A stretch of DNA of 64,000 nucleotides, taken from NCBI GenBank assembly GCA_037379345.1, contig CM074516.1, positions 37,423,626 to 37,487,625 on the forward strand, written 5' to 3'. The first letter of the stretch is position 1. Each line of letters begins with the position of its first letter. Position numbers and translations under genes: made by a program. Origin of the DNA: Perna viridis (lineage: Eukaryota). Shown here one piece after another: positions 1 through 42,500 of the stretch. The notes beneath the pieces are model-generated. The model did no database searches. It was not told where the DNA came from and worked only from the letters and a program-made list of their open reading frames with translations.

Positions 1-88
1 TGAGAGGACTGTTCATACAGATGTTCTGTTTGGTGTTGTGAAAAAGGCTCAAAGAGAAAGAAAGCATAAAGGTCTTAAGCAGATGAAG
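1..88 (+). CDS. DHX33: DHX33 exon (partial): [29 protein letters not shown]
   Basis: Follows DEAH motif II; donor aag|gtact. Confidence 0.9.
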
Positions 89-3000
89 GTACTATTCATG
101 ACATAATCTGGGTTGCTTTTGTCCCACCAAGATCTTTGGGCTATAAATTTTTATCTATGCAATTGTAAGTTCCTGCATTGTATGACACCTAAACATTTAC
201 CACAAAATATTACCTAGGTCACCATATCATATAATCCAATAGGTTAAAATTAATGACATCAAAGTTTGACCTTTGTTATACAATAAAAAGGTGATGATTA
301 TTACTGAATATATATAATCTACTGGTATTGTATGATATATATTGCCCTTACAAGCTTGTCTAATATAAAATACTACTACAATATTACCAAAGTCTTCATG
401 CAATTAACCTGAATCATTAAAACTCACTTTAAACTTTGCTAAAAATCAACTGGATAGTTTGAACAAATTTCTAATCACATATTGAGACTGTAAAGTTGCA
501 CAAAATTTGGCAATGATTTAATATTTTTGCTTAAGGTTTTCAATATTGGCTCAGTTATTGGTCCAAGGCTAGCCATATTGGATTGAGGCATAGCATAATC
601 AATATGGAAAACCTTACACAATTATACTTTTATTGACTTACTAGTTCAGTACATCATAGTGGCCTAGGCCAACATGTATTTTAACCAAGCCAGTATGATG
701 TTTTGGACAAGTAAAGCTGTATTGGATGGCTAAGTCCTGTATTAGTGCACTTTAGAATTTTGTATTGTATTAGCAGTTATGATCATATGTCAATAATACA
801 TGTACCTGGTACATTTTTTTTGTATTTTGTTAATTTTGTTTGTAGATTATAGTGATGTCAGCCACAATGGATGTAGATCATTTTTCAAATTATTTCAACA
901 GAGCACCTGTGTTATACCTTGAAGGTAGACAGTACCCTGTTCAGGTAAGCAGCACCTTGATTATACCTCAATCTGATAGAAATTTTATAGCAAGGTAAGG
1001 GATTATATTCAAATGTAAAAGAAGAAAGGCAATCTGTAAAGGGAGATAATCCAATTCGGGAGATCTGACAAAAATCTGTCCTTTTACAAAATATAGCAAA
1101 TATTAAATTCAATTTTAATTTTTTGTATGTTATGATTAAACCTGTACTGAGTGCTCCTGTATATCTGTTACAGGTATACTACTCTACAACAAGTCAGTCT
1201 GACTATGTGATGGCAGCTGTGGTGACTCTTTTCCAGATACATAAAGAAAATCCTCCAAAGTAGGTTTGACGTCTTGATTTGGAACATTAGATAGGGTTTT
1301 ATACTTTTTTATAACCCTCAATGATGCTGTCTATCAGTCTGTTCATCCTTTTGTACACAGTCTTGTTAGTGTAGTTTCTCTTAATTGCTCAATGGATTTT
1401 TATGAAACTTCATAGAAAAATTAGAAGTTATATTTCAATGACGGAAGATAATTATTGTCTCAGGCCTGCACTAAAAGAGTTTTACCTGTTCTTATCTGCT
1501 GAATGTGACACTTCCTTAACTACTCAATATATTCTGAAAAAACTGCATATGAGTTAAGACATCAATTAAGGAATGACGGTTCAATTTTTTCGGTCTATGA
1601 GGAAATAACCTTGATCATATGGTGCACACTAAAAACCGGTGTAGCATGTTATATTTAAGTGGGCACCATGGGCATTGAGGTTATTGTAAATAGACCGAAA
1701 AAGTATTGCGGTCATTCCTTATAATTCAATATTAGTCAGGGATCTCCATGGATCAAAATGAACATATGGTTCACTCTTTGGTTGGACAGATTCATGTAGA
1801 AAATAACTTGCCAATGAAAGTATGAAAAGGTTGAATGAAACGTATGTAATAACACAAGCTACAACATAGAAATTAATAATCTACAATGGTAAATCTTTCT
1901 GTCTGTACCGTGTAACTCAATTGGACCAAGGTAAACTTTTTTCTTCCTTAGGCTCTAGAGAAATTAAAATCACTGTTAGGTTTGGTCATTTTGTTGATAC
2001 CATTAAAAAGTTCTTTATAATTTAACCACAAGAACTTTAATAGTCAAATGTTGTTTTTGTCTGAATCTGTGCCATTAAACAATATTTTTGAGTTTTTGGG
2101 AGTTGATCCATCACCCTTTCAAAAAAATTCAGCAAATTGGATTGCTTTTCTGTGTCAGATAAATGCTGAGATCGTTAAGACCATATTGTATAAATTAAAG
2201 ATCGTCTCCACCCCCCTCTCCGATCTTTCTCAAATTTAATTCAACTCTTGATATTTTCTATATTTTATTATATGAAAAGTTATCAAATTTTATTAATTAA
2301 ATAAAACAGTAGAAATCATTCAGCTTATTTCAATTTTGAAGATTTTGACGACAGTGATAATTGCGAATTTGGCCGATCTGAGATTTGTTTACACGTGTGT
2401 TTCACTGCCTGACACAATAACCCCCTGGAAATTACCAATCAAAATATCGTATAATTACCATTAGAATAAACACTAGTGCCAATCATATTGAATTATGACA
2501 GATATAGGTGATTAATAAGCACCGGTAATTGGGAAATACATTGCCAATTTGCAATGTGTGGTTCAAATTTTAATACATGGCACAAGGAAAGTAACACAAG
2601 TGCAATGCCATGCAAAAAGATGTCATGGAGAACCCGGGTAGTATCAAATTTTAAGGACTAAATCAGCCAAAAAGTTGATGACGTCACAGTCACATAACAA
2701 AATTTGGTTATGAGATGATGGACACAATTTTTTATCCAATCAGAAAGTGTGTTACATCTGAAATTAAATTATATGTAGATATACATATACTTGAAGGGAG
2801 ATAGTTTATATTGTTGGTTGCCTGTAAAGGGATATTGTGCAATATAAGGCTACATGCATTACATATTAGAAGTCCAAGTGAACAGAGGCATATCAATTTT
2901 GTGAGCATGCAAACATTTTTTTGTCATTGCCGTCTGATGTCTTTTTTATTTTTCTCTGATTATTGCATAAGACTTTCTGTTTCTTGGAAAAGTTCCAGAA

Positions 3001-6000
3001 AAATGATATAGAAATTCCATTGGTTTGATTGGTTTAGAATCAAATCTTTATGTCAAATTGACTTGATTGAGTCAGCATATTATTTGTATTTGATTTCTAC
3101 TCTTTTCTGATTGTAGCCAAGATGTGTTAATTTTTATGACTGGTCAGGAAGAGATAGAATCAACAGTTAGATGTATCCGTGACATATCTAAAGATACAGT
3201 AGGAGCTCCACCCTTGGTTGTCTGCCCTTTGTATGCAGCTTTACCTTCACATTTACAGCTCAAGGTCTTCCATAAAACTCCTCAGGTAAGAAAGTTTATC
3301 TATTGCAAAATAATGGATTTTAGTAAGAATACCAGTTTTGATGCAGAAATTTTATAACATGCTGTTGTCCCTTGAATGATTTTTCTCAATTTTCATCATT
3401 GCAATTACATGTAGCAAAGTAACAATATCAACATATTGCTCCAGGTAATTTTATTTCCTTTTAAGTGCTAGAAACTGTATTTAAGGCAAAATTGAAAAAT
3501 AATGAACCATGCTTAGGAAAAAACCCACAAATGACTATATGGGCTCATAATTGTGGTCTATTGAAGAGGGTGTGATAGTTCTTTTGTCATAGAAATGTCA
3601 GAGGTTGCAGAAAAACAAGTAGAAAAGTGTGTTATCTCCCTTTGATGATGAATACATTTAATATAATTTATACCTTGCATTACTGACGCTTTTGAAAATA
3701 AATGAATGCCATTTCTACAATCTAGGTAACGGTAGAAATAAGAGTCGTGGAAAGACTTTTGTGTTATTTTCCTCCATTCTTCACCCATTACCTGATCTTT
3801 GTGAGAATAGCACTTAATCAGTCTGTAAGCATCACATGCTTTGACCTTTCTTTTTCACCTTGAATGGTTTGTATTTTTGGTCAAATTATAAAGATTAATA
3901 GTTGAATAAATATTTTTTTGTTGTAAAAAAAAACAATCTTTTCTCAGTGTTATAACAAATATATGTTTCAGGGATCCAGAAAAGTGATAGTAGCTACTAA
4001 TATTGCAGAGACTTCAGTTACTATACATGGTATCAAGTTTGTTATAGATACTGGTGTGGTAAAAGCAAAGTAAGTATTAATGATTATGCATGTATAAGAT
4101 GCTATATGATTGTAATGTTTTTTCTGCATTGAAAAGTTCACATCTGTTATAATTTTCACAATCCCTGGATATGCCATGTATAAGCATGAGGAATAACACT
4201 AGATGTTAGGGGGGTAAAAATTCACATTTCAATTTTTGCATCCCATCATCTATCACAAATACTGTATAGGGAAAATTAGAATTGCAGTGAAAAATCCATT
4301 ATATTGTAATCTCAGGACAAAATCAGTATTGGCTTAGATAGATAAGGACAAAATCAGTATTGGCTTAGATAGATGAGGACAAAATCAGTATTGGCTTAGA
4401 TAGATAAGGACAAAATCAGTATTGGCTTAGATAGATGAGGATAGGAAACTTTAATGAGGATTAATTGTTTCATTTTTTTTCAAATACATCATATTTATGG
4501 AAATGACAAACTACAGTCGACTCCACTTAATCGCATATCGCTTTATTGCATATTTCGGTTATTAGCATACTTTTCTCCTGCACAAAACCATTTCCTATTA
4601 TTCTATTAGGGAAAAAATCGCTTATTTGCGTAGGCCTTGCAGGTGCATTTCGGTTTATTGCATAGAGAATTTTGCCTCATCCAGGTAAAGACAGGTTTTT
4701 CCCAAATTCTATTTTAAGCCTTCGGGTCATAAATATGTCAATCATATTTATTGTTGTAAAAACTAGATTATCATCAATCAGGAGGTGTTAATAATGGATT
4801 AAAAACATAATGGACATAAAAGACAATTTAAATGATTTCGAATTACATTAAAATAAACAAGCACCTAGGTCAGCAATGACTTCTGACGACATGCCAAACA
4901 TCATCTTATGATGCGGCTTGGGGTTTGGCTTGGGGTATTTTTTGTCCCTATTTAAATTCTTCCGACTACAAATGATTATCAATGTAAATTTAATTTTCTT
5001 TAATGAGCTGAACAGTTTTTAGTGAGCTTGGGTTACTAGGCATAAATATCAACTGAAAATTAAAAGTCATCATTCATTCAGTACAATGTCTAACGAAATT
5101 CAACTACCCTAAGGTGCCCCATACTATCCACACTTCATAGGAATATATTGAGGTCAAAGACACGTATAATACACAACTATCAGTGTACAATGGTGATTGA
5201 ACAGAGGAATAAAAACACACAGACCATTTCAAAAGCCCAGAAACTGCAAACATTGATGAATATTACACTGAATCCTGGCTGAAATATGAAATATGGGACT
5301 TTCTTTCATAGAAAGGTCAGGAAATTACTTGACTATTTATAGATGAGAAACACGTGATTTTACTTATGAATACACATGACGTAAAGAAGGTCAATAAACA
5401 AGACAAACACAATATATATTATTATTTATTGATAAAAGAACAATACAATGTGAAGGTCTATAACAATTAAATACAAGATCAGAAATGTTGAACAGTGATA
5501 TCCCTGGTTGATCCACAGTATTGTCGTCTTACCTGAACTCACACTTTCGGTAAAATCGTAATTTTGGTTATAAGAATAGCCCGGTTATTTGCATAATTTT
5601 TATTAGCAAATAGGCTATGCAATTCAGCGGAATCTACTGTATTTATTAATATTTATACATTTTATATTATAATTTCATTTGTCTGTTGAAATGTTTAGTT
5701 CTTAAAACATGTTGTTATTCAGATTATTTAACCCAAGCAGTGGTTTAGACCTGTTAAAGGTTGTAAAAATCTCTAAAGCACAGGCCTTACAGAGGACTGG
5801 TAGGGCAGGAAGGGAGAGAGCTGGGGCATGTTACAGAATCTATACAGAGGACGAGTTTGATTCCTTGAAGAAAAATACAGTTCCAGAAATACTCAGGTAG
5901 TCAATGAAAATGCACTTCCAGAAATACTGAGGTAGTCAATGAAAATACTGCTGCAGAAATATTCAGGTAGTCAATGAAAGAACAGTTCCAGAAATACTCA

Positions 6001-12000: not shown

Positions 12001-15000
12001 CCTCAATATATACAGAGTATATAAAGGCGTCAAAGAAAACAAAATGAGTAAATCCATGCTGGAGGGGGGCATACTTACCTCAATATATACACAGTATATA
12101 AAGGTGTCAAAGGAAACAAAATGAGTAAATCCATACTGGAGGAGGGCTTACTTACCTCAATATATACAGAGTATAAAAGGTGTCAAACGAAACAAAATGA
12201 GTAAATCCATGCTGGAGGGGGCTTACTTACCTCAATATATACAGAGTATAAAAGGTGTCAAAGGAAACAAAATGAGTAAATCCATGCTGGAGGGGGGCAT
12301 ACTTACCTCAATATATACAGAGCATATAAAGGAGTCAAAGAATACAAAGTGAGTAAATTTGTGCTGGAGGTGGGGGGCATACTTACCTCAATATATACAG
12401 AGCATATAAAGGAGTCAAAGGAAACAAAGTGAGTAAATCTGTGCTGGAGGTGGGGGGCATACTTACCTCAATATATACAGAGGATATAAAGGAGTCAAAG
12501 GAAACAAAGTGAGTAAATCTGTGCTGGAGGGGGGCATACTTACCTCAATATATACAGAGTATATAAAGGTGTCAAAGGAAACAGAGTAAATCTGTGCTTC
12601 GGAGGCTTACCTACCTCATTGTAAATGCAGAGCATATTAAGTTAACCATAATATTTGTTTCACATGTAACCTCATCCACCTCATTTTCTTTACATTCAGT
12701 CAATGATATTGTTTTTCAGTTACATTAACAAATCGGCTTTGAAGAAAAAAAATATTTACCGTATTTTTTTCCAGACTATAAGTCGATGTGGAGTATAAGT
12801 CAAATTGCCTAATTTTAACCAAAATCTACGGAAAAAAACACAGATAAGTCGAATTTGGCGGATAAGTTGAGGGTCAGTCGTGTGCATTTATATCGTAGGT
12901 GTCAGCGGAAATCTGATTTGAGTGGTTTGTTTTCAACAGCATATTATTCCAGCGATGTTACTAAGTATAGTATTTCTGACTTAAATTGATATTTGTGTTT
13001 TTGTTTAATTGTACTTTGTTCTCAACTTCAATTATTTTTATTGAATGGCGTGTCAATGGCTCTGAAGCCTTAGATCATCAGGTCTACGAAATCATAAACA
13101 TGTCAAACACTAGCACCCATGTGTGAAATAAGCTGGAAATTCGTTTGATGAATTGGTCATAATTACAAGCTTTAATTAATAAATGCTGGATGACATTGTT
13201 AAGTAAAAATGAGGTCGTCTTTGGTCAGATCTGGTCTATAACAGAGGTTATACTGACTTATGAATCTGAGTGATCTGACTATTTGAATCAATTTTTTTCT
13301 CTCAATCATCTAAGGTAAAAAACTAGGTGAATGAGAATCTGAATAATTCTTCCTTTAGGATTTATCTCATTATCTTGATATAAGAATATATTTTTGACAG
13401 GAATGGTGTCATGAGAATTTTATCAACTTGAGGAATATGAGATTAGCCATGGAGATCAGAAAACAGTTGAGAGGAATATGTGAGAACCTCAAGCTTCCTC
13501 TAGAATCATGTAGACAAGATACCAACTCCATCAGGAAATGTTTATGTGCTGGATTCTTTATGAATGCTGCTGAACTCCAGAGAGAGGGAGAATATATTTC
13601 CGTAAGTATGAGAGCTGTTTCTCATAGAAAAGGAGAATATAGTTTTGCAAGAATGAGCATTGAGTTAGGGAAAAATACAAATGAAGCTGAGCTCCAAAGA
13701 GAGTGAAGGGAAAATATTTCTGTAGAGAGGTTACTTCTAGAGAATCTTTCACTTTCTTTAGTTAATATGATATTTCTTTTTTTTGTATACAAACCCTACT
13801 CCAACTTTATTTATACACATTCTGAAAACCAACATCTTGTTGGTAACTGATCTTCTATTTTTGTTTCCCTGTAATTCTTGTTGAAAAGTAATTGTTGAAT
13901 GATAGATTTGTACAGTTTTGTTTATGGACTGACATTTAGTTCAAAGTCCTTCTCTTGTTGATAGCTAGACAAAAATACATTCCCTCTTGTATTCTTTCAG
14001 TTAATAATTAAATATTTTACTTAGCGGTAGATTCCCAGTGACAGAATAACGTTCTCTGTTATTCTGAAGATTTTTAACAATGCTTAAAGATGTATTAGTA
14101 CACAGACATAAACATCATTATATGCAGTTTCAACTGTTTGTACCTGGTGGCAACAGTTGTTTATACAGATATCACTATGAGACTTGATGTTGAGTTGTGA
14201 CAACACTTTGAGACATGTGGTGATGAGCAGTGATGTGTGTCTGACATATGTTTATACAGATATCACTATGAGACTTGATGTTGAGTTGTGACAACACTTT
14301 GAGACATGTGGTGATGAGCAGTGATGTGTGTCTGACATATGTTTATACAGATATCACTATGAGACTTGATGTTGAGTTGTGACAACACTTTGAGACATGT
14401 GGTGATGAGCAGTGATGTGTATGTTGACATATATGTTTATACAGATATCACTATGAGACGTGATGTTGAGTTGTGACGACTTTTTGAGACATGTGGTGAT
14501 GAGCAGTGATGTGTATGTTGACATATATGTTTATACAGATATCACTATAAGACGTGATATTGAGTTGTGACAACACTTTAAGACATGTGGTGATGAGAGT
14601 GATGTGTATCTGACATATCTGTTTATACAGATATCACTATGAGACGTGATGTTGAGTTGTGACAACACTTTGAGACATGTGGTGATGAGCAGTGATGTGT
14701 AACTTGACATATATGTAGAAAGTGATATTTTGTATCAACAAGGTTTCATCACATGGGAAAATCTTCATATTTTGCAGATTTTGACAATTAAAGATAAATA
14801 TTTATATCTATGTTGTATTGATAATGTTATCCATATTTTTATGATATAGCTGTCCTGTAGGAAGACAGTAGCCATTCATCCATCCTCAGCATTGTTCAGA
14901 TGTAAACCTGCCTATGTTATATACAATGAATTGATCAAGACAACTAAATGTTACATGAGGTAGGTGTACATAAAGAGTCACTGGTCTCATTCTGATTACA

Positions 15001-17690: not shown

Positions 17691-18773
17691 TTATTTCCCT
17701 TTCCATCCAAGTAATCTTTTAATGTAGTGTCTGAATTTGTAGTCAAAGATGCTGTAAATATATGGATTGACTGTATGTTCTACAATAAATAATCGATTCA
17801 TGAAGATCAGAATATTGAGCTCTACACCAGGAAGTTTAAACCAGAAATGTTTGTCTTGAGTCGTGATAACAAACATAACAATTGTCGGCAGATATGATAG
17901 AAGATAAAAAAAAACTAGTGTCAAAAACATCAGGTTAAAATTAACCTTGCACCTTCTTATTTTCTTTATACGATTTTGTTTGTACTGAAACCTGATTTCA
18001 CTCATGGTTGTGTTCCCTTGTGAATTCGACCTTGTTCCTACAATGGCTTCGTTAGGATGTGTTTCATTCCCTCCATTAGGAAGATAAGTATGTTTCCATT
18101 CTCTAGAAAACTTGGATCTTTTGTAAATGACTCTCCCAATTGGAACATATACACTCACAGTCACCAGAATATTAATGATAAGTATGGCCAAGAGAGCTAT
18201 ATAGTATGCATGATTATTAAGGAAAGCATTACTATGTGCTATAACTGAACAGGAGTGTCCAGTAATATTGTTTTCATTGAATACCCAGTCCACATCTCTG
18301 ACTCCACTGGCCACCAAGACAGGAATGGAATAACCAAGTGAGATCATGAGAATTATAATAAAAGCTGCCTTTTTTCTCCACTTTGTTATTTTTGTCCCAT
18401 GTTCTGTACAAACTTTCATATATCTTTGGATGCCTATAACAAGGAGCATGTGGGCAGATCCTGTAGATGTAAAACAGCTAAAAAAGTTCAGTGTGCGACA
18501 CATTACATCTGAAGGGTAATTCACAAAGTAAAAATAGTCACTCACATGAATAATAGTACTGGAAACAATGGCTATGAGGTCTAAAGCAGCAAGTTTAGGT
18601 ATAAAACATCTGTCCTCGTTCTCACATTTCAGTCTCTGAGAGTACACAAACAGAACTGTAGTGTTCCCAACTAGTCCAAATATCCGGCAGATGATATTTA
18701 TAACAGTGTTTGGTAGGAGTATCATTGTGTAGTGATGGTTCCAGTTTAATGTCAAGCTGTTGTTAAAAGCCAT
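17691..18773 (-). CDS. Intronless rhodopsin-family (class A) GPCR, orphan/CCK-receptor-like, 360 aa
   Basis: Seven hydrophobic segments; GN in TM1, LAxxD in TM2, Cys before TM3, QRY in place of DRY, SYLP in TM6, NPYIY in TM7, N-terminal N-glycosylation sequon. First ATG is at 18773; the ORF-track start at 18785 is a GTG. Confidence 0.9.
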   Translation of the reverse strand: MAFNNSLTLNWNHHYTMILLPNTVINIICRIFGLVGNTTVLFVYSQRLKCENEDRCFIPKLAALDLIAIVSSTIIHVSDYFYFVNYPSDVMCRTLNFFSCFTSTGSAHMLLVIGIQRYMKVCTEHGTKITKWRKKAAFIIILMISLGYSIPVLVASGVRDVDWVFNENNITGHSCSVIAHSNAFLNNHAYYIALLAILIINILVTVSVYVPIGRVIYKRSKFSREWKHTYLPNGGNETHPNEAIVGTRSNSQGNTTMSEIRFQYKQNRIKKIRRCKVNFNLMFLTLVFFYLLSYLPTIVMFVITTQDKHFWFKLPGVELNILIFMNRLFIVEHTVNPYIYSIFDYKFRHYIKRLLGWKGK

Positions 18774-19356
18774 CTTCAATGACACAAATTATTTCACTCT
18801 GCTAGATGGTATTGTTCTCTTTTCTCTTTTTAGTAGTCAAATTGTACAGGTTTTATATTACAGAATTAATGGTTTCATTGAGATAAAAACAATGAATTTG
18901 TTCCTTGATTTTTAGATATTTAATGACAGTATTTACAGAGCAATATAACATCATTTATAAACAGAGCCCTATTTTTGCAATGATTCTGTTGTAATTAAAA
19001 GTATCTTGGTCAAAATCAAATGAAGTGCTAGGCAAACTAAAAACAGTTATTGAAACAAGAGTCCACAGATTTTGCCCTAATTACAGCATTGCCCTGGTAG
19101 TTCCTGACCTAGTTAAGAGCCTTTGTAGTATTGAATGATACAACAAATGATTCTCTTATTAGGAACTGGGTTATCAGTATTCTTTATCTTAGTTTTAATG
19201 GGATTTTTTAATGTGGTAGTAGGAGTAGTTTTATTAGGTTGAATAAACATTGAGTCTCTATTACAGTATTACAGAAAAACTTGAGTAAAATTGTCCAAAC
19301 AGATTAAATGTGGGATATAAGTCAGTTGTTCTGTTTCAAGTATTTTTTGTCCAGTT

Positions 19357-24516: not shown

Positions 24517-27500
24517 CTGAAACAAAGAAAAAACTTTAATAGAGTGGGAATCAAAATATGACAATTTATATACCTGTCCATTTGTTCACTTAAGTACGAG
24601 ACAACTTGTGACAGTAAAAAATTACAACTACATTATATCAACATGTCCAAACTAGTTTAATTGTTCTTACTGCCTGATATTTAGTTAGCTGGAATGCACT
24701 ACATAATTTATCTTGTCATTTTTATTTCTTACATAACCATTCAAAATGTATCTCTGTTTACTGTGCTACTAGTATATCAGCACTAGCATTTTAACCAGAA
24801 TTGTTTTCTAGGAATTTTTCATGCATTCATTCGATATGAAAGTTCTGCAAATTATTTTAGGTGTCGTCTGAGGGCTAAGTGAGCGACTCCAGGGCGACTA
24901 TTTCGCCCGAATCACCCAGTAGTGGAGTCCTGTACTACATGCCTGACTCATACATGGACTTATACTTAATGAACGTATTAATTTGTTCAAGTCTCTCTTG
25001 TTTATTTTAATGTTATTGATATAATACTATTTACCTGAGATGGGTTGTTCACATCTACAGCATTTCTTTGCAAAAAGATTTCCATAGCATTCAGCACAGT
25101 ATGGTTTATCTTCCTTTGAAGTAAATTTCTCTTTGGCTAACTCCTTGCTACAACTAGTACAAGTGAAACATTCTCTATGCCAGGGCATGTTCTTGTACGC
25201 CACACCTCCTTTGTTAATCACCTGTAATATGGAAAATGGGTTATTTAGAATTTGTAAACTTCTTATAAATGTCTAACAGGAATGTAAAATATTTTCTTTT
25301 ATTAATTACATTGAAACCTGTTTAAACTAAAAGCACAATAAACAATTATAAACAAGTAAATATTTCAGTCCTTTCCAATTTCAATACATATAGAACTGAT
25401 ATAAACCTAACAAATCCTTCTGCCCAAATGGGCCTCATTTAGACAGGTTTTACTGTGTGCATGATCAATTATGTGTAAGTAAATATTTTCTATACTGTAT
25501 ACATGTATTTTAAATACTTTGTCACTCTTCAGGATTTCATGGAATTTGAAATTTACTTATGAATTGGTTTATATCTGTTTTTCATATTTATACTAAACCC
25601 GAAATACACTCTGAAATTTAGACCATGTTTATTCATTGGACTATTTTTACTTCAGCTTTTGTATTATAAGTTTGAGAGTACGATCAGTGGTCACTTGTAG
25701 GAATGGTAGGTAATTATGACAAAAATTAAAACATATGACCTCCAGTAAAATGAGTCCTATTTCATTCAAGATAACTTACTCCATTACACTTAGTACACTT
25801 CTGGGCGAATTGATCTTCATAACAGGGTACACAGACAACTTCGTTATCACGTGGGATAAAACTCTTGGTTCTGATTGGCTCCTTACAAATCATACAGCAG
25901 AAACAGTCCTCATGCCATTGTTTGCCCTTGTACTCAAACTTTTTCATGCCTGCAAACATAGAATATAATAGATTAACAAATAACCATGATCAAGGGGACA
26001 TAACTCTAATTTAAACAAAACAATGACACAAACTCAGGAAGAAAACAAATTCTAAAAGGATTTCTATTCTACTTAAGGATAAAATATCCTAGCAGTCACA
26101 GGTTTCAAGAAATTTTCTGAAATGATCACACAAGGAGAAAATGTAGGGGTAAAAAGCAAAATTTTGGAAAATGCAAACTGCAAGGTGTCTTCCTATGTGC
26201 AGTGTATGATGATGAACATAGGTAAACTATAACAAAAGGGAGTGGGTTGCTAACTAACCAAATGCCTCATTTAGTGATGAAACTAAGTGCTTTCACAACA
26301 TTTCAATGCTTCCAAGAACATAAGCCAGCTGCAACCCATAAGAACAGAGGACCCTTAAATTCATTATAGATCAGATGCCATGAATAGAAATCATTGAATA
26401 TTGAGACCCTAACGTTAGAGAAGACCAAAATTGGTAAAATGAAAATTATGAATCTGATATACTTCAGGTTTTTAAAAATACTGCAAGATGGTGGATAAGG
26501 GGTTTCTGGTACATGAACTCCTGTAATATCATGGAACATATGAAAAGATAACCCAAGCAATAATTGGGGGTATGAACTGATGTTTACTTGATATTATATA
26601 ATTTACAATCTTATGAAAAATCTGAAAAAGTACTTAATCTTCAATATGCAATACAAAGAACCCCCTTTTTTATCAGACTATTTCATAAAAGTTCTTAAAG
26701 CTCATAATAAAAAGCTTTAAAATTCTAAGAGACATCCAGGCATATTGTACAGAATATTGCATTGTAAACATGAAGATGCCAAAATAAAGAGGGTATCTTT
26801 AAAGGGAGCTGCACAATAGGAAACACCAATAGACTTCAATAGGAATAAAGCCTTGGTAATAATTCTATGGGATTTACATGCTGATCAGGGTTAAAAATGA
26901 CAAGACTCAATTTATCATTACCAAAATGAGGTGTGAAAAACTGAAGCAAATTGTTCAACTATAAAGGGAGGTCATGGTGAAAATGTGTGTAGTTAGAAAA
27001 ACCTCCATGTTTAGAAGGCTGTGGGATGCATCAATGCAAGATCATCATCTCATGTATGTGGCTACCTAAAAGCTAACTTAGGCATAAAAGTATAGTAAGC
27101 ACCTATATCAAAACTAACACTTGAACAACCATTATTACATGACTATTGTAACAATGTATATAATCTTTATGACTATATCATGCTCTAAGGACAACATCTT
27201 TTGACCTATATTTACACCTTACATAGATGTACTTTACATTTTAATCTAGTCTACTGTTTAAACTTCTAATTCAAGTGAAATAAAAAGAACAATTATCACA
27301 AAATTGTATTTCTAAGAATATTGAATACACTGAAATCAAACCTGAAATCGAGTTTGTATTCGCTCATCATAAGATATCAGAAAACTTAAAGAGTTATCTC
27401 CCTTAAAAAAATTCACCCCCACTGCTACAATTTTTTTTTTCAAGATTGAAAAGTTTCCTGTAATGGTCAATTTACATAGAAACAAGTAAATCAGTCATAA

Positions 27501-30500
27501 ACTTTCTCAAGTAAAACAAACAATTTCACCCAAGAAAAGTTTGATATTAAAACAATTCACTCCTAATAATTTTAGAAGGACTGATACTCATTACATACCA
27601 AGAAAAGAATTAAACAAAAACATGGCATTTTATTCCCCAGAATGTCTGATGACTCAATAATTCCAATTTGTTCAGCTGTCAGTTTAGACAATAAATCTAT
27701 AGATTTGAAAAATGAGAGATCACACGCCTGAACCCATACATGTTATATGAGAAAATCAAGAACAAACTAATAATATATCACTATAATGTGAACACACCAA
27801 AATAGTTAGCCAGACCCAGAAAGTTACAGAATGAGTGTGATAAAAGGTGAAACAAAGCAAGTTATATATGTTTTTGAAATATGCAATTATATAAGGCTCA
27901 CCTAAAACACATTTAACAAGTACATTTAGAATGTATTGCTCTTAAAGAGGAAAATCATATATTCAATTATCAATCATTAAGTTTCTTTCTTTTTAAATCA
28001 CAACTATGTATATGTTTATCTGATTATTCATCAGGGTTTTTTCCATATTTTTTTGTATTTTGATTATAATTCTTTATTTCCTCAAAGAAACTCATAAGAC
28101 AGACACCAAGTGACAGCAAATAGTGTTACCATATCCTCAAGTCCAGTAACCGAAAGAAAATAAAAAAAAATACATGATGCTGATCACCAATGCTGTAAAA
28201 CTGAAGCCACATTGAGCGGCATGCTATAGACTGACCTTCTTGTCCTAACCTCTCATCTCCTGTGTAGGCACGAAAAATATAGTTAGCACTGTAGCTTTAT
28301 ACATTTACAGTTAAACCTTTGCTCAAGATTTCAATATTGGTACATAGTGTATTGGAGTTTTATTATTTATTTTGTCAGTAAATGAAGTCATAGATTCATT
28401 AAAAAAAAAACATCTTTAGAGCTAAAAACCAATCAAAAAGAGATTCAAATAAAAATTCAATAATTAAGTTATAAATGATTCATCATTTCTGGGTTTTACT
28501 GTAAATGGGATAGAATAGTTACCAAGCAACAACAAAACACTGTCTAAACTTAGCAACTGAATTAAACCTAAATAAGTATTGCTAGGCCAATTCAAGTTAG
28601 TGTTTCGATTCACATCCCTGCCTTCCCATTTACAATCATATATGTTTAATATTCAATCTTTTTTAACTTAAAACTTTTTTTTTCATTAAAAGATACAAGA
28701 ATAAAACCCTATGTTCAACCACTAATTATTTAGAAAGGGGACAGGAATCTAACAATTAACATGAAGTGGCCTTAAATAGGGAAGTTAAACACAACCTAAA
28801 ATAAATATTAAAATGCATAAAAAAAGACACCAAATGAAGGCTAATAAATGGTAATATAATGTATCTGAACATGTAATGGTATCCATGGTATGATACAAAA
28901 AGAACTTTTATTCACTGGTATCATTTCTTTTCAGTAATATGTAGTTGGTTAGTCATTTTTTCAGGTAAATCTGAAGGGTGTTTTGTGGAAGAAGAAAAAA
29001 CAGAAATCTTATTTCAGTTTTAAATTAATATAAGCTCTGGAAATAAATGTTTAGAAAGCATTATGAAGGGAAGATAACTCTTCATTTGTAATAGAAAGTA
29101 TAAGTATTTAAACATAAATATTTAAACATAGACATCTGTCTTGTTCTAATTCATTTTCAAAATCTGACTACATTTTTAACAGAACTATGAAAGGGATAAA
29201 ACAGGAACATAAAGAGTCAAGGATATAATTTTTTTTCTGTGAATCACTAATGTTAAGGGATATGCCTGGTTTTTAGAAATAGCTGTCCGTTTTGTTCATT
29301 TAAACTTTAATGGTCTAGTGTCTAATCTCTTAAGGTACAAATAGCTCTAAAATCCATCTGGAGTTTCTCTATATGGTCAAAAGCTCCCAAAATCAAAAAC
29401 ATCATGGGAAATATGCGCCCACTAAAACCTTTTCAGTTTTTTATAAGCAAACAATGGAATTCTTCTTGAACACATTTAACAATATAAATAAGTCATTTAT
29501 CTTCACTGGTAGAATTATTTACACAGGGACAAAAATATCCAGATGATACATTAGAAAATAAATAGTGAGCAAAGAAAATAAAATGTCAAGAATTAAAACA
29601 ATCTTTAATTTTGCTGAAACAAAAATCTCATTTATTACTAACTATAAAATGCTGCAACATAGAAATCAAAGATTTATTAGTCATCTGTTTGCCTTAGAAA
29701 CAATAAAGAGTAAAGAATTATGTAATGTTATGTCAGAAGTGATACTCATTACAGAAATTTTATCAGAAGTTGCTTTTCTGGACTCGGGTTAAGGGTATTG
29801 CTGAGATCAGCATTATGTTTGCAATATAGAGTAATCCAGTAAAGCAATAATGTCACTAAGTGAAGATGACCTATAAACATGTCTACCTCTAATTCTGGTG
29901 TATGTTGGTTTTATTTGCACTTATTGCTATACATGACTAGAACTTAAAGTTTCTATATAGATTTCAGATATGCTATTCTAGCAGACTGCAATTAAATTGT
30001 TGAATGAGCACAGTCTAAGTTCTTATTTTGTTTCATTTGGCATACTTTGTTGACACATTTTTGGATATTATCCCATAATTATACAGGATTAAATACACTG
30101 TGGTTATCAAAGAAAACTCCTCAGATAAAACAGTCAGTGTGAATCAAAATATCAACAAAGCTAATACTGTGAATGTGTTATTGTTGGTGGGACACCACTT
30201 TTTGTGTTTTTTTTGTGGGTTCCACACTAAGCAATTCTCCTAAGCTAATCTAAGGAAAAAAATTCCCAACAGATGTGAAGATAGGGCAAATCTAACAGAG
30301 TTAAGAAAACAAGGCTATTGTTTGCTGAAATCGTAGAACTCTCTCATGATAGATCATTCTACATTGTTTTGTGTATTTAAGAAGCAGACATGTCAATCTC
30401 AACACAGCATCAATACACAAACAGGTTTTAGAAATTAATTTCACTAATAATTTGGTTCCAGCCTCCTTTAATTCTATAATATAAATACATATAATGTGGA

Positions 30501-33500
30501 TTTCATATCTTTCACAATATCATAGGAATAAACTTACAAGTGTAAGACAATTATTCAAAATTGAGACATAATGTCAATACAATAAACTTGTTCTTGGGGA
30601 AAACAACATAGAAAGAGCAATACATGTATCAGTAACCCCCAGACTGAATGGTATATCTCTACAGCATTGTAAAGAAATGATTCAATCAAGGACCAAAATA
30701 GATAAACAATAGAGATAACAGTAATAGTTCTTTTGGAAGTATCTGCAAGCTTTTGGTCTGGTTAAATGGCAAGTCTTCAAACATGGAGAAGTCTGTTGGT
30801 TAGAATTACTCATTTGAAAACAGTTATATAGGGTCCTTAAACAATTTTAAATAAAGGTCTTTTAGAATAAGCACACTGTCAATCAGGTATTCACAATCCT
30901 TAATTGTGAACAAAAGGTGTAAAGGAAAATAAATTATGAAAAAGAATTTTTTTTTTCAATTCAGTAAAATAAAAAAAAAGAAACAACAGTGAAGTCCCAT
31001 CAGTCAATGTATTCAATCACTCAATATCAATTGAAAAATTTTACATGAAAGAGTTACATTCCCTTACATGTTAATTTGCAGTAAATAACTCAATTTACTG
31101 AAATGATAACTTACACTGTAAAGAGATAGGTTAATTCATAACATGTTACCCCCACTGCCTGGTTTTTAGGGAGTCTGACACTAAGTGCTACATGGCATGA
31201 TGGTTAAAACAAGTCATCAGCCTCTAATGAATTCAATGAAGTTGGCATTTGTTTCAAAGACAAACTAAAAAGTGTGTACCAAACAGAATATGATGGATTT
31301 ATCAAATAATTGATAATATATCAAGATGTCACTGTTGATTATTATATCATAGTATTTTGCACACGACACTTAGATCAGTAAGGCTCATGCTGATCCTTAT
31401 TTGCTTTGCACCAAACACATTTGGCTTTGGACTGTATTTCACTTTTTGCACACGACACCTGAAAGTTCTGATGCACAAGCTCCAGACCAGAAAGTGCACC
31501 AGGAAGATTATGGAAGATTATTGCCTGTTATAATTAGAAATGACAAAGAAACTATCTCATCTGTAATTAATTACTGTTTGTTGGGTATTTATCACTGCAA
31601 AGACATTATGTATGATGATGTAAAATAAAGGGGCAGACAACCACTGCAATGACAGAGGTCAGAAATAAGGTACAGCTTGCGTTCAGAAAATTCTGTTACC
31701 TACATGAAGTTACAGACAGTAGTATCTTTGGTATTGTGTTTATTGATGACTTCCATCCACACTCTGGATAATGATATCAATTAATGTAATTAATCTGCAT
31801 GTAACTGGCTCATTATTACTTTCATTGCTTTGGTGTTACATAAAAAAGTATGCAACCATATGCAATTCCAATATTACTAATAAGACCGTAATCATACAAA
31901 ATATCTAGAAATACAATGTTTTATGAAGGACAAGATAAGTAGACCAGTCTACAGTGTGTGTCATAGAATGGTTAATATAATCAGACACTAGATTATAAGT
32001 GTTTTTTTTTTAAATGACAGACCAAAACAGAAAAAGTCTACAGAATTATTTAAAATAAAAAAAAACTTAATTAATTGAAATAAAAGACAAGATTGAAGCC
32101 TAATCAACAGTTATCTACCTTAGTTTTTAAACGATGAACTAAATACACATCTAAAATGTAATCAAAATCAGAACTAAGATGAGGAACAATTAACATTTGG
32201 GAGAAACATAATTATCTGGCTGATCTGTTTCATTGATGAGAAGCACCAAGATTCTAGTAAAACAGATGGCTAAATGCTTTGGTTACCTGACAAAAAACAA
32301 CATCATTAATAAATGAAAACATTACTATTATATGATGTAGAGAGAAATAGAATGTCTGCTGAGCCTTTTGATCTAGGAAGAATATGACCTTCAGAAAAGT
32401 ACAAACAAACAAAATCTATCTATGACCAAATTGGTAGTTCTACGTCAGTTGACGTCAAAGAAAGCCTTGGTAGGTTTACAGCAAAACAGAACTTTGCACA
32501 CGGCACTACTGCAACTTGTGTATAAATATAATTCATATTTGTTAATTAACAAGATGACAGAGAATGGTAATGAACAATTTGAGAAGACAAAGATCTTCCG
32601 CCTACTGTGGATACCTAACAAAGTAACAAGCTCAATTCACAAGGAATAATGTTTTCTTAACATTTGTTCTGGCACAAACTTACATTAGAAATATGCAACT
32701 TAATGAGTCATACTGAAGAAATTGTTACAGACATTTTGCAACAGAAATTGTCTAATTAATGCCAAATTTTATAATTTGTTACACAGAGAAAGTCAGCAAT
32801 TATTTTATACATGCACTAAAGAAACATGTTTAGTAAAATGATGTATAATTCAACACCAACATCTTCAAAAGATAGACAAGATCCTCAATTAACAGAAACA
32901 AAGATGATGAGACATAATTATTATAATTGGCTTTCATTTTCCTTTCTGAAAGTGTAAAATTTAGTTTAAATGCAAAACTCATACTACAGAGCAGTGTAAA
33001 ATTTTCTAAGATTATAGTTTTAGCAATATAAAGAAAGGTAGACCAAAGAACTGGTGTATACTGGTAATTGTTCTTCATCCTGACAAGTCCTGAAAGAAAA
33101 CTGCAAAACATAGTATTTAGTCGGTCAAATATGAAAAAAAAAGCAATACAATTTAAACTAAATTTACATCCAACTAAAGAATCTTCTTAATTCAAATGAT
33201 AGTTACCTCCCCTGAAAGGCTCTCCACATCCATCACATCTAGCAGCAAACTTGTTATCATGGCAGTCGGAACAGAAAATCTGGTCATTCTTAGGAGCAAA
33301 GGCTTGATCAACTAAAGACTTCTGGCACTCACAACATTTAAAGCAGAATTCATGCCAATGACGATCTTTGTACGACAAATCCTGAAATAAAAATGTATAT
33401 TGTGAATGTGATGCACTAATACTGGTATGAACTCAAGAAGTGGATAAAAGTACACATATAAAAAAAATACTTCATTACAAATAATTTGGATATCAGTAGG

Positions 33501-36500
33501 TATGTACAACAGTACTATTTGAACTGTGAATGTTTTTGTCACTTTGTCAAAAGCCATCAATGGCCACCAACCACAAAAAAAGAGTTCGACAAAAGCCATT
33601 TTAGTAGGAGACCATAATAGGATTATAACATGCTAAAAATTAGTCAGAATTATGAGTATATTAAGTAGGACTCCAGATAAGAATCATGTAAAATGTGATA
33701 CATGGTTGGAAAGCCTACATATTTTTATTTTTGATATTTTGTTTAAAATGCTTCGGTAAACAGAAATTAACATTTGGTTTTTCGTACAACCCATGCTCAT
33801 AGGAGATAAAAAATTGTATAGAATGCACTGTAGAATTCAAAATTAAGGGACATAACTCTGTAAATGACAATCAAATACAATAGAATCTACTGGATTTTTA
33901 ATGTTGATTATCTCTTAAGAGCAGGTAGATTTGAATGAATAATTACATATTTCATAATATAGACCCATAAAACAACTTAATTACAAAAATAAAATATGTA
34001 GCCTTTTTTGGGGTGTATCACATTTTTCAGATTTTGCATGATTCTTACAGACAGCTACTTAACAAGACTGACTACTTGAACACTAAATGAAATACTAGAA
34101 TAAAAAGTTCATCTGTAAATGTATGAACAAATAACATTCATAGCCTGTGAAACATAAAAACCATGAAATATTTACACCCAACAAAACATTAAAACCACCT
34201 AACATTTACAGCAGAGTACCATCAAAAAAAACATATTGCCAAATTGAAATATCGTGTGTATAGAAAGTGCTTCCTCAGCTGAAGGTAGATAATTGGAGCT
34301 AGACCAAGTATTCTCATGTACATCTAAAAATTAGGATGTAATTCCTACAAGGAATGAAAATTCACAGACAGGTGATGAAATTAATTTGTACAACTGTATT
34401 ATATCCTCAGTAAGCCATAACTAAAACAATATTGTTTAGAAAATCAACAAAGTGACGTCTAGAAGAATTTCTACAGAATGCTAGGTGTGGGAACAATTGA
34501 TGATTATCAACTACTTTTTATTCAATGTTACTGCATTTTATGCATTCTGTTAAAATAATTGTCTATAGAATATTTTTAATGTGTTTAAAAACAAGTAACA
34601 GAGACATAAAATTGTTGTGATAGGTATACAAATTTACTGCAACTAATTATCAAGAGTGAAAAATAGGAGTCACACCAAGAGGAATCAGACAGTGACCAAA
34701 ACTGCTTTAATATGTATATACTGTACAAAGTTTGAATATACTGGTTCAATACTTATTAAGTTATATATTACACAACATAATTACCATCCACAACATAAAG
34801 TGGCCAAAAAAAAACCACGTTACTACATGAAAGTATCAAACATCAATGGGAATTGGGAATAACAAAATCCACAAAAAATGGTTAAATATGGGAGAAATAT
34901 TTACACAATATGATTTAGTTTACAATTAAGTTACATCATATTAGCAGTTGTATACTGAAACATATGTAAATATAATACACCTTAAGTAAGCCACAAAAAT
35001 GTTTTATGTAACATCCTCAATATGTGTCTTACGAGAGATGAGAGAGATGGGTGACTACTGTAACAAATGGAATGAGTAATGAATCAATATGCAAGGTTTA
35101 AGTGCACATGACGATTTTTGAATTTTACATTGTGTACAAAGTAAACTCATGACATAATCAAAGACCTGAAATGATGTCACATAGTAAATAATGTTGACTT
35201 AATCATATTTGTGGTACTTAGCTTCAAACACAGAATTATGTTCAAACAATATGGATGAAAATTTTGAATCCTTGAATTGTACCATTCTACAAAAGAATAA
35301 CCAATGGACATCCAATGGGAATTTAGGTGTTCAGAGAAAATAACTCAAGATGATATATTCTAGTTAGATAAAATATTAATAAGAAATAGATTCTAACCCA
35401 AAATTTAATTTACACATGAAGCAGTAGTTCTTTTTTTCAAAACATATGTTAGGCTTTTAGACAAACAAGCATCCTTTTAAGATGGTGTATGGATAAATGT
35501 AACACTGTATGCTGCAAAAAACAGAAACTCTTAATTCTTTTATACATAACTTGCTTTATTTTGTGGGTTCATGATTATAAAGAGGAACATACTTCAAATC
35601 CAATAGAATCCATATAAGACTGTCATGCATTCACAGTGTATAAGATATAAGCATTATCTTGATATTGATCAGCAGAGAAATAAGGAAGCGTGTCCCCAAG
35701 GCCCTGGTAACCCTTACAGTGACCATTGTAATATCTGATTCTTCACAGGAAACTAAACTAAGAAGTGATAATTCTACCAAATGAAAGGTAACTGCTCCTT
35801 AACCTAATCCTTACCTAACATATTATCTAAAGTGATCTGAATCAGCAAAGAAAACATGAACACAACAATTGGCAGACCAAACAATTAACTTGGGCCAAGA
35901 AGTAAATAGTTCAAGATCAGGCAGATGTATCTAAATACTCAAAGACAATCTGGAAGCCAGCTGGCATTATCAGCTCATAAAACCATTAAAGAGCCGAGTC
36001 ATCATTAACAACAAATGATGTCATAATGAGGATGAGAGATAGATGTTTAGGGAGGTAATACATACATGATTGAAGGTGGAATGAGGAAATAACTGAACCA
36101 GCTGTTACAACTCCTATAAATGTCTCATGCTTCTAATTATATAATGAAAGTGTGAGAAAAGTATCAATTAGGCAACAGCCAATAGGACATGACAGAGGAA
36201 CTAAGTTGAATCATTCAGACTTAGTTTTGGCTTTGCCGGAGGTCTTAAAAACTCATTTTTTTCACTGACACTGAAAGCAGTGCTCATATTGACTAATGAG
36301 GAAATAATCTGATTGTCCTTTAAATTAGAAACATTCTATCTGCAATCCTGGCCGTGAAAGCACTAATCACTATGCACTAATGTGTAACACCTAATTTATT
36401 ATTTGTAGATTATCTTAAACCTAGTGCAAGGTTGTATCATTGTATCTGTATTGATTTAATTATACTAAGAAAGATCTGAGTAATACTCATGCAAGCTTCC

Positions 36501-39500: not shown

Positions 39501-42500
39501 TCATAAAGAAAATTTACAATAATCAGAATTTCTCAGTGAGAAACTTCTGACAATTATTGTAAAGATCCATGAAGCTGAAAACTCAGGAATTGGACAAAAA
39601 CTCAATGGAATATGATTTCCGATTCATTAGTTACTAATAAAGAATGGCTTTAATTTCGATAAATTGGTCTGATCAGGCCAAAAAAAAAAAACAAAAAAAC
39701 ACAGAAACTTAACCAACCCTGCTTAGAGTAAATAAACCACTTTTTGCCCACTCTATACACTATATGCATAGTTGTCATTCCTTCTGCAAATTGCAAAAAA
39801 CATTTTCTAAAGAAGAAGATTTTACCTATCCACCATAAAAACTTTTTTTTTTAATAATTAGAAGTAGCTAGAAAAAAAATATTATCTTGTTTTGGCCTCA
39901 GATAGATAGCAGTAGAAACCAAATAAATCCAGATGAAGAGCACATAAATTTAATTTCAGAAAACCTAGTTCTGACATGACCAAAGGATTGTTTTATTACA
40001 GACAATTTACACCTTGTTTAAAGAGAAGGAAACTGAAAAAAATTATTCATACAATGTCATTTCAGTCTTGACACTAAATTACCAAAAAACAACAACAAAA
40101 AATAATAAAAAAATACTTAAAAAAAAAGACCCTAACGTGAAAAAAGCTAAGGAAGATAAACTCCATGTAAATCTGAATTCTGAATCAAAATGTGGAAGAA
40201 TGCAACTGGTTAACCTTTAACAAGGGTAAAAAGGTTGTATTTGCCATTTCTGCTTCATGTCACATAAAATCTAAAATCCCATAACCAAGTTATACATTTG
40301 GCTTTATAGCAAACATTGTGAAAACTTGGCAACAGTAGAACTAATTTATTAGTCTGTATCATAAACATGGAACTTTCATTGTCTCTCAATAAAAATCAAT
40401 GGGGCAGTTAATTCCCCAAATAGCTTGCACAACTAATGGAGAAATATATTTAAAGGGTGTCCATTTAGTTTGATATCATCCATCATTCTGACTGCTGAAT
40501 CTGATTGAGATATAAATAAAAACTTTTTGGTTTTTTGTAAACTAATCCTAGAGGATAGATGAGAAAGAGTGGGTCACGAAGGCCTATCCATCATGCAGTT
40601 TATCAATACTCAGGGTGGCACCATGATTGATTATGTATAGAAATCATGTTATTTTTTCCATTGCAGACTCTCAGACTACTAGTATTGCATTGCACAACCA
40701 TATAATGGTGTCATAGGAGATGTACATAATGCACTGTGAAACCTGTCTAAACCAACCCCTTACAAACTAAATGGTTTGGTTTAGGCAAGTCCTTGGTTTA
40801 CACAAGTTCAAAATGCAATGAAACTGATATTAAGGGACTTCAGAAGATGGTTTTCTCTTTACATAGATTCGGGAAGGAGAAGATTTCACTGTAATAAAAA
40901 CAAACTGCAGACAACATTACAGTATGATGTTTCATTGACAACTATAGACGTCATTTACCCCTACTTTGTAGGAGCTATAGTGATCATGGTGTCTGTCTGT
41001 TTGTCTGTCCACAACTTGTTTATTACTGCAACTACTCATAACAGCCACTTTTATTTGATTTCAGACTTAAGCGAGATCAACTTCCAATTTGACAACTTTT
41101 TGTTTATTATTTTACCATATGCAACAAAGTCACTGGGAATTGTCTTCCTTTTGATAAGTTTTGCTTATAGTTTTTCTAATTATTTAAAGGTTCTTAAACT
41201 TTACTGAAGGAGAGATTAGAAGAATCATAAAAATGGTGAATGGAGTTTGGTACTAATTCAGCATAGGATTTCATGCAAAAATATAGTTTATTCCAATTAT
41301 AGTGGTATATGGTAGATTCTTCTATTCACTAAACTAAAAGTATTTTATTCCTGTAATACATTTACAGCAAGTAAAATAGTTAATTTCAAGGGACAGATAT
41401 GGTCTTTCTTGAACAGACAGTTGACAAGAAGATTTTCAACTTCCTGTTATTCCATAGGCGTACAAGTTCTTCTCAACTGTGCAGTTAACTATACTTATCA
41501 CAATTCATCTGGTATCCAAGGAAGACTAAATCTATCCAGTGAAGTTAACTGTTTTATTCACTATAAAATGATGTTGCTTACAGACAGAATAATAAACAGA
41601 CATACAGTCTCCAATGCAAAAGCAACAGAAGTTTACCACACTTTCTTTACAATAATGCAAAATTGCTTCAATATCCTATTACATAAAATTGAAAACAAAA
41701 TCTTTGAAATGGCAGTTATCAAAATAACTATCATTAATGAAACTGTCAATAAATAGCCCTTCATTATCAAAAATAATGAATTAAGTAATTATAAACATAT
41801 GTTAAGCAATTATATCAGATAAACTTACATACTTTAAATTCAGCTACATACAGGATATATTATAGATATCTGATTAAAGATTCCCTATAGATCTTCCAAA
41901 TTTAGAACCAAGATAAAATTTTACAGAAACACATGCAAACTCACCTTGAATTTTTACCTGGATGATAATGAACTAAGAGCCTGATGCAAAATTAACAGAA
42001 TACCTAGAAAATCATCAATTTCTTTATATGTAATAGACATAGAGGGTAGTGTGCAAAACTGTGTGCAAACTATTTCCTACATAGTAAGTGAGAGTTAACA
42101 GTTACATTCTTCATGATAAATCTCCACAATCAATCAGACATATTAATCTGGCTGCAAAACATCTGCATAACTCATCTGTTTACTATCATAATATAGATTA
42201 TATGGTGGGATGAAGAGTACTGCCCGAGGACAGCAGGCTGAGAGAAAATAGCCTCATTGTTTATTTCCATTATATATACAGTTGAGATAAAAAAAGAAGT
42301 TCATTAGCACTATCCCAGAGCACTTTAGATAATAGAGATCAAGGTGTGAAAGTCATGATAAAAACTGCATAATTCAGTATGAACTAACAGTTTGGTAGCC
42401 CTAAAATTATAACACAAATATTGTCTGAGAATGGAAATAAATATTGAAAGTTCTAAATGAATGAAGTAAACCAATATCAAGTTTCTGAGAGTAAGAAAGA

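Follow-up and report, generated by a model that had tools for sequence, protein, structure and literature searches.

To our knowledge, few MTF-1 targets have been described other than metallothioneins (MTs) and zinc transporters, and hardly any of them come from molluscs. A conserved intronic MRE cluster has been described in the Drosophila ferritin gene Fer1HCH; it came to light in a comparable search, aimed at clusters of extended MREs, and it lies in the first intron, near two promoters, at genes known to be metal-induced (PMC1635269). The same source names a LIM gene, csrp1, as one of the targets of MTF-1 in mammals (PMC1635269). The case of Zip10 shows that MTF-1 is able to repress as well as to activate (PMC3124522). 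The promoter of an annelid MT gene combines a CRE with MREs, and the ATF of this animal is phosphorylated upon cadmium exposure (PMC5485937).

We analysed a stretch of 64,000 nucleotides of Perna viridis DNA (the window), in which three MTF-1-type 14-mers lie in one intron of a predicted LIM gene. Like the Fer1HCH cluster, which is conserved between species (PMC1635269), the mussel cluster places three MREs inside an intron, and its host gene is likewise metal-related but no metallothionein; extended MREs recur in the corresponding intron of one relative. Unlike Fer1HCH, the intron is internal and approximately 9-11 kb from the nearest candidate promoter, and induction by metals is a prediction. 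The predicted host gene resembles mouse Csrp1, which is under MTF-1 control according to that source (PMC1635269), in being a LIM-domain, zinc-binding cytoskeletal adaptor gene; however, Csrp1 has two LIM domains and is of the CRP type, whereas the host gene has PET and six LIM domains and is of the FHL/Limpet type. The arrangement is also similar to that of mouse Zip10 (Slc39a10), in which the MRE is intragenic and downstream of the transcription start (PMC3124522), although Zip10 has just one site, at +17, which affects promoter escape, and the window contains a distal intronic cluster. Our literature searches returned nothing on the exact 14-mer and nothing tying FHL/Limpet genes to MTF-1 or to metals, including cadmium, in mussels.

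Seven minus-strand exons of the host gene were mapped, comprising a PET-motif exon (62.5-62.8 kb) and six exons that match Pfam LIM; read one by one, the exons complete six LIM domains. The 12-zinc LIM gene proposed in the preliminary description is in keeping with these six Pfam domains, which correspond to 12 Zn. The intron that bears the sites and the adjoining exon are as follows.

25950-33206, minus strand: host intron of 7.3 kb, between the exon finishing LIM3 and the exon finishing LIM4
33207-33383, minus strand: LIM exon directly upstream, in the sense of the gene, of the MRE-bearing intron; Pfam LIM E = 6e-10; single copy in the genome

A gastropod protein named "four and a half LIM domains protein 2" in its source has 48 of 58 residues in common with the product of the exon at 33207-33383. 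As predicted from its exons, the host gene is a minus-strand PET and six-LIM gene of FHL2/Limpet-like type.

RNA contigs from four RNA runs (four studies) covered this exon at a depth of 50-3400, and a loose contig end at 33206 continues into the exon that begins at 25949. Since the contigs splice 33207-33383 to this exon, the intron is genuine and contains the sites, which are oriented antisense to the gene; this upholds the earlier placement of all three in one LIM-gene intron. The intron itself was present in RNA contigs at low depth, at least over the part between 29800 and the exon edge, and unspliced contigs bridged the donor at 33206; read-through past this donor would append six residues before a stop and yield a PET and three-LIM product. 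On the opposite side of the exon, the sampled stretches had no RNA depth except at a repeat, but holes in contig coverage prove nothing. A search for RNA genes in the intron found no Rfam family, the only hit being a sub-threshold match to mir-996 at 29881-29957 (E = 0.21).

The three 14-mers and the elements around the third were located as follows.

31356-31369, plus strand: MRE1, an exact TTTGCACACGACAC, the same as one site of the C7 MT-like promoter; CpG kept at 31364
31445-31458, plus strand: MRE2, an exact TTTGCACACGACAC, 89 nt past MRE1, with flanks unlike those of MRE1
32493-32506, plus strand: MRE3, an exact TTTGCACACGGCAC and thereby the extended consensus in full; this 14-mer is also present in the orthologous intron of a relative (L038)
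32443-32447 and 32450-32457, no strand assigned: half-CRE CGTCA and palindromic CRE TGACGTCA, 35-50 nt upstream of MRE3
32521-32528, plus strand: TATAAATA, 14 nt downstream of MRE3, in promoter-like geometry

The positions and the common orientation given for the three sites in the preliminary description were exact, all three being on the plus strand. The third site is 1.05 kb from the closely spaced first two, and all three fall within 1.15 kb. No fourth copy of the 14-mer was found in the window, even with one mismatch permitted, and 100 dinucleotide-preserving shuffles of the window yielded no exact 14-mer. The core TGCRCNC is satisfied by all three sites (each TGCACAC), and each has the form TTTGCACACG(A/G)CAC, with T's on the 5' side, A at core position 6, and G past the core. 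The refined Drosophila MRE is described by these same three features (PMC1635269). The 14-mer had been described as the extended MTF-1 consensus, in agreement with this refined Drosophila MRE and with the MREs of Perna viridis MT promoters. The JASPAR HT-SELEX core for MTF-1 is quoted as TGCACACG, and a CUT&RUN study of cadmium-treated human cells has raised doubt as to whether this motif mirrors MTF-1 binding (PMC10047149). That doubt is met here because the MREs were matched within the species' own MT promoters.

A cluster of mussel MT-10/MT-20-type metallothionein genes was located at 7.527-7.552 Mb of C1, one exon of which shows 78% identity with "metallothionein 20-III-like [Mytilus edulis]" (E = 9e-7). 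Three of these MT genes carry, upstream and on their own strand, a tandem pair TTTGCACACGGCC / TGCACACGGCAT with 12-nt spacing, and the order of their promoters is half-CRE TGACG, approximately 20 nt, the MRE pair, 12 nt, TATATAA, approximately 95 nt, and then ATG with a short first exon. On C7, a Cys-rich MT-like gene carries three to four sites, one of them the exact 14-mer of the window, and downstream of these come a TATA-like box and a first exon that is short; its MT-like identity is judged by composition, because homology searches with its exon gave no matches and the atlas gave only weak leads. Since the three MT genes and this fourth, MT-like gene carry the same sequence in MRE-TATA promoters, the 14-mer is predicted to be a working MRE in this species; by the species' own standard, the site in the window is, judged by sequence, the MRE that Perna viridis MT genes carry.

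The module in the window resembles these MT promoters in its extended site (TTTGCACACGGC...), in the presence of several copies in the same orientation, in a CRE or half-CRE upstream, and in a TATA box placed 12-15 nt beyond the final site. It differs from them in lying deep in an intron of a large gene, in antisense orientation, with no Cys-rich exon following it and no start seen in RNA contigs, and its sequence homology to the MT promoters is limited to the motifs. A second, related element was found in the same gene, in this case in the sense orientation.

42020-42069, minus strand: two MREs in tandem, spaced by 12 nt and followed at 15 nt by TATAAAGA; the element points along the LIM gene's own sense strand

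The C1 MT genes have 12 nt between MRE and TATA; the corresponding gap is 14 nt for the C7 gene and 15 nt for the 42-kb element. The genome contains 28 MT-type tandem MRE pairs, of which three belong to MT promoters, one to the C7 MT-like gene, and one to the 42-kb element.

We counted patterns (the 10-mer, the 14-mer, and controls) in the 723-Mb genome. The 10-mer TTTGCACACG occurred 633 times compared with 628 for the reversed control, or approximately once per 1.1 Mb; at this rate, the genome-wide expectation for a triplet spanning no more than 1.15 kb is approximately 3e-4 (8e-5 for a single orientation). The full 14-mer was present in 21 copies versus three for the control. The cluster in the window is the sole multi-copy cluster of the exact 14-mer in the genome, and nowhere else do two exact copies fall within 5 kb of each other. 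An earlier rough estimate had put the expectation at well below 0.001 such 14-mers per window; the rarity stands, but the figure is slightly higher, since 21 copies per 723 Mb correspond to approximately 0.002 per 64-kb window. The corrected rate leaves the conclusion on the cluster unaffected.

Nine of the 21 copies of the 14-mer are located in a segmentally duplicated region of approximately 28 kb on C10, eight of them with near-identical flanks, whereas the flanks of the copies outside this region are unique. A repeat family was ruled out on these grounds, only the C10 copies having flanks in common. The flanks of the three sites in the window had been called unrelated, and we found that their similarity stops at 14-20 nt; a BLAST of 31.0-33.2 kb against all 14-mer loci and the MT loci, the check proposed for a repeat family, returned nothing beyond 14-18 nt. 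TRF detected no tandem array at the sites, and local tandem duplication was ruled out by this result together with the unrelated MRE flanks. A relic of a duplicated MT promoter or coding exon was also rejected: BLAST likeness to the MT loci is limited to the motif, and there is no Cys-rich frame around the sites. The cluster is neither chance nor repeat, because approximately 3e-4 triplets are expected and the flanks match nothing. From sequence, we regard it as almost certainly a selected MRE module.

The palindromic CRE and half-CRE that were reported next to the third site were both found, and full CREs numbered two in the window versus 0.14 expected. The gap of 14 nt between MRE3 and the TATA box is inside the range of approximately 12-17 nt of a metallothionein-type core promoter. 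The element TATAAATA falls within the span of the preliminary description, which did not mention it.

The region around the sites is poor in CpG (observed/expected 0.19-0.21). Of the ten CpGs of 31.0-33.2 kb, five belong to the three MREs and the CRE/half-CRE, which bears out the proposed retention of CpG in CpG-poor DNA. That the motif CpGs were kept would fit protection from methylation-driven decay or purifying selection.

For the comparison with relatives, exon-sized gene calls from other assemblies led to contigs of four related lineages (A-D). Lineage A is represented by L038, a 72.8-kb contig and the only relative contig that reaches far into a long intron. Its two collinear orthologous exons are 87-98% identical in protein; the exon DNA is 86% identical, with differences at 25 of 178 bases but at only one of 58 residues. 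The introns of L038 did not align with those of the window. The orthologous intron of L038 nevertheless contains an exact TTTGCACACGGCAC at a distance of 2.5 kb from the exon and a second extended MRE, GTTGCACACGGCCC, at 1.6 kb, both on the same antisense strand; the probability of an exact 14-mer by chance in the 10 kb of L038 intron available is approximately 3e-4. Although MAFFT drew collinear blocks, the likeness between the flanks of MRE3 and those of the L038 site was not above that of shuffles. What recurs is therefore the presence of sites, and a particular site may or may not be orthologous. At the matching places, L038 has no TATA box (CCTAAATC instead) and no full CRE; only a half-CRE occurs, 70 nt away. 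The contigs of lineages B and C end 0.8-1.1 kb into the intron, and the 1.8-kb intron of the distant lineage D has no extended MRE outside the coding sequence. The short relative contigs L034-L037 and L039-L043, which extend only 0.2-2.4 kb past the exon, were uninformative or negative. The cross-species comparison called for in the preliminary description thus gave a divided answer, with extended MREs in the L038 intron (one lineage), but none in the short intron of lineage D and flanks that cannot be aligned.

These results suggest, with moderate confidence, that the three sites form an MTF-1-type intronic enhancer module of the PET and six-LIM host gene. This reading is preferred because the MREs, the feature kept in L038, are taken as primary. 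Free zinc would rise directly or through displacement by cadmium or copper, and the zinc-finger factor that drives the MT genes of the species would then bind the three high-affinity sites, probably assisted by an ATF/CREB factor at the adjacent CRE. The module would serve as an intronic enhancer for the promoters of the host gene, one of which may be that at 42 kb, with its own metallothionein-style MRE pair and TATA box. We infer the binding of MTF-1, the enhancer action, the LIM gene as target, and the direction of the response; the target of the putative enhancer could also be a different gene. The preliminary description had inferred a heavy-metal-responsive enhancer or promoter that couples the LIM gene to zinc status. 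The sequence-level part of the enhancer inference found support in the match to the species' own MT promoters, the sole multi-copy 14-mer cluster, and the recurrence in L038, whereas the promoter option gained no backing from the RNA contigs or from L038.

On this evidence the LIM gene is a good candidate for metal-regulated expression. A LIM adaptor that binds 12 zinc and has the densest cluster of perfect MREs in the genome would, as a candidate, link zinc status to cytoskeletal or muscle signalling. Mussels are standard sentinels of metal pollution, and a LIM gene with an MRE cluster and an MT-style internal promoter could be a biomarker gene. The calibration within the genome, in which the MT promoters define the MRE of the species and the whole-genome counts define the background, is reusable for finding other targets.

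The third MRE, the CRE, and the TATA box might instead constitute a metal-inducible, MT-style promoter on the plus strand, antisense to the gene, with a start at approximately 32550 and with MRE1 and MRE2 as a distal element; its product would be a non-coding or very short transcript through the exon at 33207-33383. The order of CRE, 35 nt, MRE, 14 nt, and TATAAATA resembles that of the MT promoters (half-CRE, approximately 20 nt, MREs, 12-14 nt, TATA), and the three sites point in one direction. The chance of TATAAA in the 15-nt slot after MRE3 is approximately 0.02, and jointly with that of a full CRE at 60 nt or less (0.002), the arrangement has a probability of approximately 4e-5. However, the RNA contigs of the four studies were flat across 32550 at a depth of 3-8, with no start, joint, or step, and one contig covered 32067-32886 at a single depth. 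The plus strand downstream holds only a 31-aa ORF without a family, with no Cys-rich or coding exon and no Rfam family, and L038 keeps the MRE but lacks the TATA box and has only the distant half-CRE. RNA contigs are strand-blind and say little about starts, and the animals sampled had probably not been exposed to metals; for these reasons we consider an antisense promoter unlikely but do not rate it lower.

We regard it as distinctly improbable that the cluster has no part in metal regulation and represents a neutral accident, sites of another factor, or an RNA-level role in a retained or read-through intron. The low-depth presence of the intron in RNA is compatible with an RNA-level role, and the 10-mer is not enriched genome-wide over its control. 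Against this stand the small number of triplets expected in the whole genome, the identity of the sites with those of MT promoters, their recurrence in L038 despite introns that cannot be aligned, the retained CpGs of the motifs, and the second MT-type MRE element in the LIM gene at 42 kb.

By analogy, the cluster might also act as a metal-operated switch between a PET and three-LIM (testin-like) product ending in this intron and six-LIM/FHL-type products, through MTF-1 bound at 31.3-32.5 kb or through antisense transcription from the CRE-MRE-TATA unit, which we consider very improbable; if it were true, the amount and kind of zinc-binding LIM scaffold would follow the zinc load. Least probable is that metal-loaded MTF-1 within the gene would be a roadblock to the elongating polymerase, yielding less of the full-length six-LIM product or more PET and three-LIM transcripts that pass the donor at 33206 and stop within this intron: mouse Zip10, in which MTF-1 bound downstream of the start site blocks Pol II, offers a precedent (PMC3124522), and the unspliced contigs across the donor, the intron coverage, and the read-through stop are compatible with it, but the Zip10 site is at +17 and not tens of kilobases into a gene, and low intron coverage may be ordinary pre-mRNA, the holes in contigs proving nothing.

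The enhancer reading concerns a part of the gene in which related motifs accumulate: TTTGCACAC occurred six times in the window versus 0.70 expected, and all six copies, one of them coding, are within 31.3-42.1 kb of the LIM gene. As a separate observation, the 14-mer read as its reverse complement codes for V-V-C-K, a string that is also part of the MT motif CKVVCK.

Outside the MRE-bearing intron, a second arrangement of metal response elements (MREs; MTF-1 sites) was found in the LIM gene:
Window 42020-42069, minus strand (the sense strand of the LIM gene): tandem pair of MREs with 12-nt spacing, plus TATAAAGA.
This pair is one of 28 such pairs genome-wide, a set that includes three metallothionein (MT) promoters and an MT-like gene on C7, a sequence of the 723-Mb genome. 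The MT loci considered here were as follows:
L029-L031 (G000:C1:7527000-7551999), both strands: cluster of at least four MT-10/20-type MT genes.
L026 6194-8300 (G000:C7, approximately 24.987-24.989 Mb), minus strand: MT-like gene.

In the C7 MT-like gene, a TATA-like box accompanies three to four MREs; the first exon encodes MSSTATG, and the second has 16 Cys within approximately 60 aa. A word search of 5.8 billion proteins revealed no homologue, and the atlas leads were weak, with nothing better. This gene may represent an MT type that has not yet been described. In the C1 cluster, the sequence of one copy, whose exon lies near 12106-12249 in the joined stretch, suggests a pseudogene, because W and F stand at positions occupied by C in the other copies. 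The coding motif CKVVCK, read antisense, corresponds to an MRE-like 12-mer; therefore, part of the MRE matches in the C1 cluster are coding sequence.

The exact 14-mer of the intronic MREs was also mapped to the following loci:
L012-L020, L027 and L028 (G000:C10:10.66-11.47 Mb): segmentally duplicated region of approximately 28 kb with nine exact 14-mers.
L023 3466-3513 (G000:C1:16861465): exact TTTGCACACGGCAC, followed after 20 nt by TTTGCACACAGCG.
In eight of the C10 copies, the site is followed by 6 nt and TATAAAA (a variant of it in two copies), and an ATG-initiated ORF begins approximately 22 nt beyond this box. No Pfam match was obtained for the ORF; the duplicated ORFs may constitute a metal-responsive gene family. 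At L023, a TATA-like stretch lies downstream of the two sequences.

Contigs from four RNA runs (four studies) were compared with the window. The MRE-bearing intron was covered at a depth of 3-7 over 29800-33206 (minus strand), continuously with the exon at 33207-33383, and unspliced contigs bridged the donor of this exon. Read-through past the donor would add G-N-Y-H-L-N before a stop codon, yielding a product with PET and three LIM domains. This intronic RNA could stem from ordinary pre-mRNA, from retention of the intron or from transcripts with an alternative 3' end. None of the three intronic MREs had a listed variant letter in the contigs of the four runs; a 23-nt insertion polymorphism was present at 31563 in contigs from two studies.

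Near the same exon, an interspersed repeat of approximately 405 bp (33660-34065) has no fewer than 6096 candidate genomic loci, with 91-95% identity for the copies scored and no Rfam match. RNA contig depth across the repeat was 1e3-6e4, with numerous internal joints; its appearance is that of a young SINE- or MITE-like family with abundant transcription. One further ORF was located 5.6 kb past the 3' end of the LIM gene:
Window 17691-18785, minus strand: ORF of 364 aa without introns that matches 7tm_1, a GPCR domain of the rhodopsin family (E = 7e-22).
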